A stretch of 64,000 nt of DNA, taken from the sequence record ON529850.1, one strand, 5' to 3'. The notes below the pieces were generated by a model that made no database searches, was not told the origin of the DNA, and worked only from the letters and a program-made list of their open reading frames with translations. The position numbers were made by a program, and so were the translations under genes. Positions 10,702 through 45,839 of the stretch are shown in pieces. Within the stretch, counting starts at the first letter, position 1; every line of letters begins with the position of its first letter.

Positions 10702-11496
10702 TTACAGACGCGAAGCGCGATCGCCGTTCGCCAGGGCCAGCTTGTCGGCCGCCGACAGGTTGCGCATCTCGGCCTGGGTCTTGCCCAGAGCGCCGCGCTG
10801 CCCGCCGTCCGCACCGCCGCCAGCCGCGCCGCCGCCGTGAGTGCCCTTGAAGTAGTGAGGCGCTTCGTCCTTCAGCTTCAGAATCCACTCCTTGGGCGTC
10901 AGCGGCGAGCCGCCGTCAGCACCGTACAGTTGCAGATCGCCCTGGTAGGCCAGAACGCGACCATCATCGCCGGCGCGCCAGACTTCCGTCGCGCGGTGCA
11001 GGATGTCGCGGACGGCCGCCGGAGCGACGCCCAGTTCCGGGTCGATCAGAGCGTCCTTGATGGCGGTATTCACCAGGGTGCGCTTGTAGGTCGATTCCAG
11101 ATCGGTGGCCTTGGTCTTCCAGTTGGCGCCTTCCTTCTGGGCGGCGCGAATCTGGTCCTCCAGGACCTTCTTCATATCTTCGGTCCGGCGGATCACTTCT
11201 TCTTCGATCCGGCGGCTGTCGGTCAGCTGACCATCCTTCACGCGCTGCGACGTCGCGCGCAGTTCAGTCAGGTCGTTGACAAAGGCGGTGGGGTCTTCGC
11301 CGACGATCGGCTCCAGCGTCTCCACCTTCTTCTTCAGCTCGTCGCGTTCCTTGACGAGCGTGATGTTGGTCTCGCGGAATTCGTCCAGTTTTTCCTGGGC
11401 GACGAGGTTGATTTGGACCTTGTCCCCATCAGCCTTGGCATAGCTGCGGAGCGGCTCCGGAATCTGATCCAGAGTGTCGAAAGTGCAAATGGGCAT
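10702..11496 (-). CDS. Capsid scaffolding protein (likely start MPICTF at 11496), 264 aa
   Basis: Predicted coiled-coil, charged protein with a Gly-rich linker and short C-terminal helix, immediately upstream of the MCP. Confidence 0.7.
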   Translation of the reverse strand: MPICTFDTLDQIPEPLRSYAKADGDKVQINLVAQEKLDEFRETNITLVKERDELKKKVETLEPIVGEDPTAFVNDLTELRATSQRVKDGQLTDSRRIEEEVIRRTEDMKKVLEDQIRAAQKEGANWKTKATDLESTYKRTLVNTAIKDALIDPELGVAPAAVRDILHRATEVWRAGDDGRVLAYQGDLQLYGADGGSPLTPKEWILKLKDEAPHYFKGTHGGGAAGGGADGGQRGALGKTQAEMRNLSAADKLALANGDRASRL

Positions 11497-34040: not shown

Positions 34041-34086
34041 GATGAATCGGGCAGGGTCCCCGAGGATGAATCGGGCAGGGTCCCCG
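34041..34086. repeat. Tandem duplication of a 24-nt unit, GATGAATCGGGCAGGGTCCCCGAG
   Basis: Copies at 34041-34064 and 34065-34086 (second copy truncated). Confidence 0.85.
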
Positions 34087-34107
34087 TTAAGGTTAATGAC
34101 CCAGGGC

Positions 34108-34224
34108 TTAGGGCTTACGCCCCTTGCGGGTGTAAGCCCCGCGCCCCTTCTTGGGGCGGACCACGCGGGGGCGATAAGCCGGGGTGGCGAGGGCGGCGGC
34201 GGCGGGGTTCTTTTTGGGCTTCAT
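34108..34224 (-). CDS. arfA: ArfA-like alternative ribosome-rescue peptide, 38 aa (not in track)
   Basis: MKPKKNPAAAALATPAYRPRVVRPKKGRGAYTRKGRKP aligns without gaps to the E. coli ArfA core as I recall it ([31 protein letters not shown]), 15/31 identical; own TTGACA promoter (34275-34280) and GGAGA RBS. Confidence 0.75.
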   Translation of the reverse strand: MKPKKNPAAAALATPAYRPRVVRPKKGRGAYTRKGRKP

Positions 34225-34287
34225 GGGGTGTCTCCGTTGAAAGCAAAGACACCCTTAAAGGAAGCGCGGTTGACTGTCAACCCCTTT

Positions 34288-34992
34288 TTATTCGGATAAG
34301 CCCAGAGAGCCGGGCGCGATCTTCTGCCCCTGATCCAGTCGAACCGCCATCAGGCCCCGCAGGACTTCGCCGCGCGCCGCATCGTCGGGCAGGGCGTCGA
34401 GGCGCGCCGTCAGGGCCGCGCCGAACGTGCCGGGGAACAGGACGTGCGCCCCGTCTTGCGCGCGAACAGCGATGCGATCCGTCGCGGTCGTGTAGGGCGC
34501 CCACAGCGTCACGCCGGGATATTCCGCCGCGACCGTCGCGCCAGGGCGAACCGGGGAGGGCTGGCCCGCGCCATAGCCCGCCGGGTGTTCGGTTTCGCCC
34601 GGTTGCGGGTCGGCGTAGCCTTTGCGGACCCGTTCGGCGATCTGCGACGCCGACACCAGCGCGCCGCTGGCATCGACGCGAACCTGGCCGCAAGGCTGTT
34701 CAATCACGACGTAATCCAGCGCCGAGGCTTCATCATGGACGCGGTTGACGATCAGGCAGATGGTCGAGGCCGTGCCGTATTCCCCTTCGCGCAGGGTGAA
34801 GGACGCCCGGTAGGGATGCAGCGTGGTGGCGTAAACGCTGGCGGCGGTCTTGGCGGTCAGGACGCCTTGGCCGTTGTTGAGCTTCCACGCCGCCAGCTTC
34901 TTGGTGAAGCGTTCGGGCGGGCGCGGCGTCCCGTCGGAAAAGGCGACGAGGGCGCCCAGCGGGGCGGTGCGGATCAGTTCGGCGGCGTTCAT
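34288..34992 (-). CDS. Hypothetical early protein, 234 aa
   Basis: Cassette layout; N-terminus GALVAFSDGTPRPPERF..KLAAW recalls plasmid/ICE hypotheticals (not verified). Confidence 0.65.
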   Translation of the reverse strand: MNAAELIRTAPLGALVAFSDGTPRPPERFTKKLAAWKLNNGQGVLTAKTAASVYATTLHPYRASFTLREGEYGTASTICLIVNRVHDEASALDYVVIEQPCGQVRVDASGALVSASQIAERVRKGYADPQPGETEHPAGYGAGQPSPVRPGATVAAEYPGVTLWAPYTTATDRIAVRAQDGAHVLFPGTFGAALTARLDALPDDAARGEVLRGLMAVRLDQGQKIAPGSLGLSE

Positions 34993-44840: not shown

Positions 44841-45839
44841 GGCTTCGTCTTTGTCGCCGCCGGTGTCGAACGGATCAGCCCATTGCGTGGTGACGATGAC
44901 CGTCCCTTCGTGCCCGTAGAAGTCGTAGGACAGGCCGGGGCGCAGGTCGAAGTCGGGGAAGGCGGCGATCTGCCTCATCAGGTCGGCGGAGCCGGCGACG
45001 TGTTCGGCGATGGCGGCGTCCTGGGCGAACAGGCGGCGCAGGATCGCCTGCGCCTGTTCGGGCGTGTCGGCGTAGCGCGGCGGGACCGCCGGGGATTGGC
45101 GGTCGATGCGGAAGCGACGGGCGCGGACCTTGATCTCGAAAGGCCCGGTCCAGGCGCGCACGTCCGCCGGGGCGCCGGCGGCCTCGCTCAGGGCGTCGAA
45201 CGCCATCAGGTCATGCACCGCCACCGCGTCTTGGAACTCCGCGCGGGTGACGGGGTAGGTCCAGCGCGAATCGTCGACCTCCATGGCTTGGCCCAGAATC
45301 ATGGCCTGACCTTGGAAGACCGCCAGATAGGGGGCGGCTTCGGCGTCCGGCGCGGGCGGATCGCGATCCATCCAGAAGCGATAGAGGGCGCGCCACCCGG
45401 CGGCGCGATCCCGGTCGCCGGTGTCGGGCATGTAGGCGTCGTGCAGGGCCTCGGCGGCGGGGGTGCGATCCGGCGCGTCCGCGTCGCCCTGATCCGCCTC
45501 ATGGGCGCCGAAGGTGCGAAGCGCCGCCTGGGTGAAGGTCTCGGTCCAGGGTCCGTCCGGACCCGCGCGCAGCGCCTCCACCACTTCGGGATGCGTGAGG
45601 TGGGAAAATTGCGAAGGGTCCCCGGCGATGAATTCGGCAGGGTCCCCGGCCGAAAATTGCGAAGGGTCCCCGGCCGAAAATTGCGAAGGGTCCCCGGTCG
45701 GGAATTCGGCCGGGTCCCCGGCGGGGAATTGCGTAGGGTCCCCGGACTCGATCCGGTCGGCCTCCTGGGTCAGCTCGGCGGCCTGCGCCAGCAGGGCGGC
45801 GGCGGCGGTGCGCATGACGGCGGCGGATGTCAGTCTCAT
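44838..45839 (-). CDS. Hypothetical early protein, 333 aa, with six 8-aa repeats (GDPxxFxA)
   Basis: GDPTQFPA GDPAEFPT GDPSQFSA GDPSQFSA GDPAEFIA GDPSQFSH; 24-nt units at 45603-45746. Confidence 0.7.
   Translation of the reverse strand: MRLTSAAVMRTAAAALLAQAAELTQEADRIESGDPTQFPAGDPAEFPTGDPSQFSAGDPSQFSAGDPAEFIAGDPSQFSHLTHPEVVEALRAGPDGPWTETFTQAALRTFGAHEADQGDADAPDRTPAAEALHDAYMPDTGDRDRAAGWRALYRFWMDRDPPAPDAEAAPYLAVFQGQAMILGQAMEVDDSRWTYPVTRAEFQDAVAVHDLMAFDALSEAAGAPADVRAWTGPFEIKVRARRFRIDRQSPAVPPRYADTPEQAQAILRRLFAQDAAIAEHVAGSADLMRQIAAFPDFDLRPGLSYDFYGHEGTVIVTTQWADPFDTGGDKDEA

Follow-up and report, generated by a model that had tools for sequence, protein, structure and literature searches.

As judged from sequence comparisons, the product of GURKE_04610, a very short reading frame of Brevundimonas phage vB_BpoS-Gurke, is a homologue of the ribosome-rescue factor ArfA. 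We consider it probable that this frame represents a genuine, expressed ArfA-family rescue gene, which would belong to a short lineage common to many phages and to SAR11 bacteria and would confer RF2-dependent, tmRNA-independent ribosome rescue. Phage Gurke (ON529850.1, Dolichocephalovirinae; host, B. pondensis LVF1) has a genome of 321,510 bp, of which a stretch of 64,000 nucleotides was analyzed here; positions in this window equal those of the record minus 248,000. The frame occupies positions 34108-34224 of the minus strand, including the stop codon, with its ATG at 34224-34222 and its TAA at 34110-34108. It codes for 38 amino acids, carries the GenBank product label "hypothetical protein" and is overlapped by other reading frames on both strands. 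Its delineation as an ArfA-like gene draws on the list of reading frames and their translations, on Pfam, PDB and control-profile comparisons, and on dN/dS values. The initial annotation of this DNA had proposed a phage-encoded frame of the same extent without naming a strand; the frame and the quoted peptide are present, and the window is indeed phage DNA. No tRNA or tmRNA was detected by scanning the window, the neighboring proteins gave no Pfam or PHROG matches, and an Rfam search around the locus returned sub-threshold chance matches only. In the publication describing the Brevundimonas phages, ArfA is not discussed, and 29 tRNAs and no tmRNA are listed for Gurke (PMC10070969); these tRNAs and a tRNA-His guanylyltransferase annotated outside the window (ON529850.1, 19154-19939) are further translation-related genes of the phage.

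The affiliation with the ArfA family is indicated by three comparisons. The Pfam model PF03889 (ArfA) matches the peptide with 33.2 bits (E = 3.5e-8; gathering score, 25.5), aligning residues 5-37 with positions 11-43 of the 44 profile positions. A phmmer search of all PDB chains with GURKE_04610 as query retrieved as its sole matches the E. coli ArfA chains of ribosome-RF2 complexes, the best one (E = 8.5e-5) pairing residues 4-36 without gaps with ArfA residues 12-44 in full-length numbering, 16 of the 33 positions being identical. Because a basic peptide encoded in GC-rich DNA calls for a control, a profile was built from 26 gamma- and betaproteobacterial ArfA sequences and no others. It scored GURKE_04610 with 44.0 bits, compared to 3.5 bits for the runner-up among the 1384 stop-to-stop reading frames of the window and 8.8 bits for the best of 2000 shuffled versions of the peptide. 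The assignment to the ArfA family made in the initial annotation is thus borne out by all three comparisons: the gap-free likeness to E. coli ArfA, given there as 15 identities over 31 residues, holds, and the Pfam search proposed there as a check returned a match above the gathering score. NCBIfam contained no match for the Gurke peptide or its counterpart from phage Kikimora, and PHROGs contained none for the Gurke peptide, whereas its relatives gave weak matches to phrog_20887 alone, a family with no assigned function.

A view on the residues of known function, taken from a review on E. coli ArfA and mapped via the phmmer alignment, shows which parts of the factor are retained. The small residue A18 of E. 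coli corresponds to an identical alanine (A10) in Gurke, F25 is conservatively replaced by Y17, and the RF2-contacting strand Q27-E30 is represented by P19-R20-V21-V22, in which R28 and V29 are identical. The predicted channel-binding segment of the phage peptide (residues 25-36) aligns without gaps with the K33-K44 region of E. coli ArfA, with K, K, G, G, Y, R, K and G being identical, and thus retains the basic G-x-G-x-Y-x-R-K-G stretch. The likeness to E. coli ArfA (YhdL; PDB entries 5MGP, 5MDV, 5U4I, 5H5U and 7OJ0) therefore comprises the small residue at A18, an aromatic one at F25, the R28/V29 pair and the basic channel-binding stretch within the 33 gap-free positions. Differences are found at both ends. 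The N-terminus is eight residues shorter, with five residues ahead of the equivalent of N14 and no counterpart of E. coli residues 1-8, such that the segment associated with the RF2 switch loop (E. coli residues 1-14) is not preserved and PF03889 positions 1-10 remain unmatched; a similarly short N-terminus is found in the SAR11 proteins and in most viral relatives. The Lys-His pocket motif is likewise not retained, the aligned residues in Gurke being R36 and K37 (Arg-Lys). At its C-terminus, the phage peptide extends to the counterpart of E. coli residue 46, six residues past the end of a 1-40 truncation of E. coli ArfA which is reported as inactive in the review. Among 35 relatives from phages and metagenomes, A9, G27, G29 and R33 are invariant, and L12, V22, K26, Y31 and K34 are conserved in at least 90% of the sequences.

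These correspondences suggest a course of action for the phage peptide which would follow that of its E. coli counterpart. When a ribosome runs onto the 3' end of a truncated mRNA and stalls, its empty mRNA entry channel would be threaded by the basic C-terminal half of the peptide, beginning with the KKG run and extending through the final residue. The central segment (Y17, P19-V22) would then add a beta-strand to domains II/IV of the host RF2, the helix bearing A10 would let RF2 open, and RF2 would hydrolyze the peptidyl-tRNA, freeing the ribosome. In this way, infected cells of a host family reported to be without ArfA would gain from the phage additional capacity for rescue independent of tmRNA. 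We infer ribosome binding, RF2 recruitment, the timing of action and a benefit to the phage. Regarding this benefit, the initial annotation suggested that the factor may serve to counter RNase toxins or abortive infection. Activation of RF2 by a phage ArfA across species would not be automatic, and the RF2 of Brevundimonas has presumably had no co-evolution with a host ArfA. According to the review, probing of the empty mRNA channel by a basic C-terminal segment is also a feature of BrfA from Bacillus subtilis, ArfT from Francisella, ArfB and the SmpB tail, and BrfA likewise adds a beta-strand to RF2. None of these factors shows a detectable sequence relationship to the Gurke peptide in the Pfam, PDB and NCBIfam searches, and ArfB, which is the rescue system used by C. 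crescentus, possesses a GGQ domain of its own.

The gene is kept among the Brevundimonas phages, eight of which carry orthologues of 36-39 amino acids, each with its own stop codon. These copies are syntenic and share 68-92% identity, with a common downstream neighbor and differing upstream neighbors. Over 30 codons from four of these phages, the dN/dS values range from 0.19 to 0.61 (pS up to 0.61), indicating that the gene is under purifying selection. In existing records, the product name "alternative ribosome-rescue factor" has already been given to the orthologues of phages Kikimora, Kabachok, Papperlapapp, Bambus and Domovoi. Together with published mentions of phage ArfA, in one sentence for phage RXM (PMC8953757) and as a gene transcribed both early and late for HTVC027P gp30 (PMC12753301), these five sister annotations take away the novelty of the Gurke gene as a kind. 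The annotated or reported phage genes KIKIMORA_04590, KABACHOK_05300, RXM g10, OC p093 and HTVC027P gp30 all share the Pfam family with the Gurke gene above the cut-off.

Related reading frames are present in further phages of Alphaproteobacteria, namely Citromicrobium phage RXM, Ochrobactrum phages OC and ORM_20, Erythrobacter phage XM05, Roseobacter phage CRP-212 and Pelagibacter phages HTVC027P and HTVC034P; those scanned with the Pfam ArfA model all score above its cut-off. In addition, Caulobacter phage Cr30 contains an unannotated ArfA-like frame of 50 codons (KF301602.1, complement 11139-11291; L008, 2411-2563; 27.2 bits with Pfam), which ends directly past the basic core and whose true start is uncertain, because a start at the first ATG would mean an overlap of 53 nt with the upstream gene. 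The carriers fall into unrelated phage groups, comprising members of the Dolichocephalovirinae, the T4-like phages Cr30 and OC, the siphovirus RXM and pelagiphages. ArfA-like frames are found in phages of ArfA-bearing Gammaproteobacteria as well, as exemplified by Salmonella phage Arash, Pseudomonas phages pf16 and Y3 and Pseudoalteromonas phage J2-1. In Arash the ArfA-like stretch (OQ632216.1, 57961-58074) is 63% identical to the enterobacterial protein and lies under the label "ribosomal protein L2", and in pf16 (KU873925.1, 131796-131912) it lies under "hypothetical protein". C. crescentus is reported to lack ArfA and to depend on tmRNA or ArfB, and a nucleotide-profile survey recorded arfA in 0 of 2376 Alphaproteobacteria (PMC11633108), in agreement with the initial annotation on the host side. 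Nevertheless, a phage supplying what its host lacks does not serve as a general explanation, and the notion that only phages of ArfA-less hosts carry ArfA was rejected in view of the Salmonella, Pseudomonas and Pseudoalteromonas phages.

At the 3' end of the gene, the Gurke ArfA deviates from that of E. coli, which is encoded by 72 codons and produced in its active form from an RNase III-cut non-stop mRNA (review). In Gurke, a true stop codon follows two codons past the basic core, and the hydrophobic C-terminal tail is absent, as had been proposed before. Accordingly, the layout of proteobacterial ArfA regulation, consisting of a non-stop mRNA (arising from an internal hairpin cut by RNase III or from an internal terminator) and a destabilizing hydrophobic tail of the full-length product, is not found here, and intact transcripts would yield free peptide without any failure of tmRNA, because the frame ends at a stop codon. 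The initial annotation went further in regarding the tail-less factor as always on. The tail-less, stop-terminated form stands, but constitutive activity is unproven, because the stop codon is enclosed in a very stable hairpin. This predicted RNA stem-loop (34103-34147, minus strand) spans the final 13 codons, has the TAA in its 3' arm and folds with -33.4 kcal/mol (z = -4.28), none of 200 shuffled sequences folding as well. A similar topology is seen in phages Kabachok, Marchewka and OC, while Kikimora and Cr30 are without a hairpin at the end of the ArfA frame.

The hairpin leads to the alternative that survives best, although we regard it as unlikely: the rescue role would be the same but not constitutive, as the stop-enclosing hairpin would be cut or would end the transcript, leaving much of the mRNA non-stop and the output still coupled to tmRNA activity, as it is in bacteria. 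Besides the stability of the Gurke structure and the position of its stop codon, this proposal can draw on phages OC and RXM, in which terminator-like hairpins lie inside the frame at the same place, followed by a T-run in OC and, in the GC-rich hairpin directly after the core of RXM, by TTT. The RXM (60 aa) and OC (65 aa) proteins also carry a hydrophobic tail, and these features (L004, ~2550-2590; L005, ~2500-2560) amount to the bacterial non-stop layout, unlike the situation in Gurke, where no U-tract follows the hairpin. Comparable 3' structure is present in long-tailed arfA genes of bacteria and viruses, whose median z is -2.0, with values of -2 or below in 40 of 79 genes versus 10 of 79 control segments, an excess that fits the known non-stop regulation. 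The short-tailed class to which the Gurke gene belongs shows no such excess (median z of -0.49 versus -0.50 for controls), and the Gurke hairpin is an exception within this class rather than one of its features. Further arguments against a non-stop mechanism are that the hairpin is absent from Kikimora and Cr30 and that Cr30 and each of the eight Brevundimonas phages keep an in-frame stop two codons behind the core. Strict covariation within the stem was likewise rejected, since the pairing register is shifted by one base between Gurke and Kabachok. The Gurke hairpin may thus be a relic, a stabilizer of the 3' end or a processing site.

The short architecture is not restricted to phages. The best among the matches listed in a profile scan of genomes came from Pelagibacteraceae, whose ArfA-like proteins consist of 37-42 amino acids, have 3-8 residues ahead of the conserved Asn and finish in a hydrophilic tail (5-8 residues) at a stop codon of their own; the SAR11 protein scores 28.3 bits with the Pfam ArfA model (cut-off, 25.5). 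On contigs of up to 638 kb, the genes are consistently flanked by a Trans_reg_C regulator on one side and a PfkB kinase on the other, as in L046 (1489-1617), L048 (1495-1611) and about 40 further loci of Pelagibacteraceae (L009-L078). They share the short layout with the Gurke gene but differ from it in being cellular, chromosomal and AT-rich, and the SAR11 copy examined (L046) is without a 3' hairpin. The ArfA proteins of Gamma- and Betaproteobacteria, on the other hand, carry at least 27 residues ahead of the basic motif, and their tails comprise 9-39 residues. Because SAR11 chromosomes encode the short form too, the short stop-terminated layout is a lineage trait and no phage invention, and the earlier interpretation of it as a phage-specific adaptation is not supported. 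Caulobacterales were not represented among the best 80 loci of the scan. As a side aspect, several ArfA frames from Halomonas, Colwellia and Paraglaciecola (L043, L047, L054, L070, L074, L075, L080 and L085) end with ...QAA or ...LIAA, resembling the C-terminus of the ssrA degradation tag.

The SAR11 gene also bears on whether the peptide helps or hinders rescue. It is conceivable, if improbable, that the peptide acts as a competitor, filling the vacant mRNA channel and thereby blocking tmRNA-SmpB or ArfB, or holding RF2 in its closed state, such that the fate of stalled ribosomes would be altered to the advantage of the phage. ArfA and the SmpB tail do occupy the same channel, and the segment shortened in the phage peptide is the N-terminal one, which in E. 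coli ArfA becomes ordered together with the RF2 switch loop upon opening of RF2 (review). Binding without activation has precedents as well, as the A18T variant of E. coli ArfA binds with RF2 activation being blocked, and RF2 from T. thermophilus stays closed when held by E. coli ArfA (review). However, the alanine equivalent to A18 and the RF2-contacting strand are conserved in the phage peptide, blocked rescue would tie up ribosomes needed by the phage itself, and a chromosomal gene of the same short architecture in SAR11 is hard to reconcile with an inhibitor. Since this syntenic cellular gene has the same architecture, the short form would rather be a working rescue factor than a poison.

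ArfA relatives are widespread in sequence collections. At least 205 contigs of IMG/VR contain them, and of the 79 frames read from this source, 27 have tails of at most eight residues, and many are fusions of 100-170 amino acids. A search of a protein database with an alignment headed by a relative of 59 amino acids returned at least 6137 clusters with relatives at E values of 0.001 or below; nearly all of the best 120 of these have a precomputed PF03889 match, and many are 35-50 amino acids long. Two of the clusters listed lie on contigs of 158-170 kb with dense small reading frames, as is typical of large phages. In the viral fusion proteins of 100-170 residues, the ArfA core is followed by a C-terminal domain matching phrog_17747 (E = 1.4e-31), the function of which is unassigned, and some of them have an N-terminal extension in addition (P0020, P0021 and P0055; L089, L103, L106, L113 and L148). 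Such embedded cores lend some color to the very improbable idea that the ArfA-like motif is a reusable module and the Gurke product a basic nucleic-acid-binding peptide with another role. The Gurke peptide, however, consists of the ArfA core alone, its match is not confined to the basic stretch but extends over the entire ordered part of E. coli ArfA, and composition is an insufficient explanation of this match, as shuffled peptides reach 8.8 bits at most.

GURKE_04610 appears to be equipped for its own transcription and translation. The gap of 63 bp to the upstream gene is filled by a promoter cassette, a leader and a palindrome. The cassette (34252-34291, minus strand) consists of an A-rich stretch, TTGACA (34280-34275), a 17-nt spacer and TAAGGG (34257-34252), and its repeated layout suggests that it acts as a promoter: the TTGACA layout recurs upstream of 14 of the 22 annotated genes in the 11-kb neighborhood, and the cassette is kept in Kikimora. 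A generic sigma-70 scan missed it, since its rule accepts only second hexamers ending in T, and a "terminator" called by a generic scan at 34268-34282 was discarded as lying on the wrong strand, being a palindrome beside an A-run. Kikimora has an identical copy of this perfect 15-bp palindrome (7-1-7), which overlaps the -35 hexamer and occurs in perfect form just once in the window; the palindrome may represent an operator giving the ArfA gene a control of its own. The 17-nt leader (34222-34238, minus strand) contains the Shine-Dalgarno sequence GGAGA (34235-34231) and ends in the ATG. Allowing up to two mismatches, it occurs 30 times in the window against an expectation of 0.2, and every copy lies on the minus strand and has a start codon at its end. 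The predicted promoter and ribosome-binding site ascribed to the frame initially are thereby confirmed as sequence features matching the pattern of most neighboring genes.

Between the transcription units, a 12-mer, GTTAACCTTAAC, recurs in 54 copies in the window (0.04 expected), all within 28.8-63 kb. Almost every copy is on the minus strand, and inverted pairs are frequent between units; the copy next to the ArfA gene (34086-34097, minus strand), which differs by one mismatch, marks such a boundary. The minus strand of window positions 28800-63000 is an array of about 30 small units, each with the TTGACA-N17 layout and a near-identical 17-nt leader, and the recurrence of leader, 12-mer and TTGACA layout identifies GURKE_04610 as one unit of this single-promoter array. 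The array would be transcribed early by the host RNA polymerase. Two identical 21-bp direct repeats spaced by 3 bp lie downstream of the frame (34041-34085, minus strand) and are probably not part of the ArfA gene. They correspond to two copies of tandem units of about 24 nt beginning with GGGGACCC, of which at least six are present near 45.7 kb (array at ~45600-45750) and several downstream of the Kabachok orthologue (L006, ~2600-2700). The promoter and leader cassette, together with the transcription of a pelagiphage ArfA gene, suggests that GURKE_04610 is expressed. That it is merely a chance reading frame in GC-rich DNA, as its very short length and the overlapping frames on both strands might imply, is refuted in practice and deserves next to no credence, given the match to a curated family above the cut-off, the control profile, dN/dS values below 1, the dedicated predicted promoter and leader, and the orthologues in many phages.

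Bacteria cannot do without ribosome rescue, a process that is being explored as a drug target. The ArfA gene is common in phage genomes, even though no phage-encoded rescue factor has been characterized; the papers found contain neither a functional study of any phage ArfA nor an assay of an alphaproteobacterial one. The Gurke ArfA is a sound find of a kind already known from annotated sister phages, and it provides a clean example, coming from a cultured jumbo phage with a host family reported to lack ArfA and having its own predicted promoter; the related unannotated frame in Cr30 adds a phage of the model organism Caulobacter crescentus. Correct annotation is now possible for GURKE_04610, for the orthologues of Marchewka and Bajun and for the Cr30 frame, and the short form of ArfA can be recognized as a lineage common to phages and SAR11. 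A note of caution applies to nucleotide-based surveys, which under-count ArfA. Beyond the assignment as a rescue gene, we put forward only tentatively, and with less than even confidence, that the short stop-terminated peptides form a separate lineage free of tmRNA-coupled control, that many unrelated phages employ them from early promoters, and that SAR11 possesses, from the same lineage, an ArfA which has gone unrecognized. If the first two of these proposals are true, phages would take rescue out of the hands of tmRNA, freeing ribosomes from decaying or defense-cleaved mRNA with the products left untagged. If the SAR11 protein is indeed an ArfA, this would overturn the view of the Alphaproteobacteria as a group without this factor.
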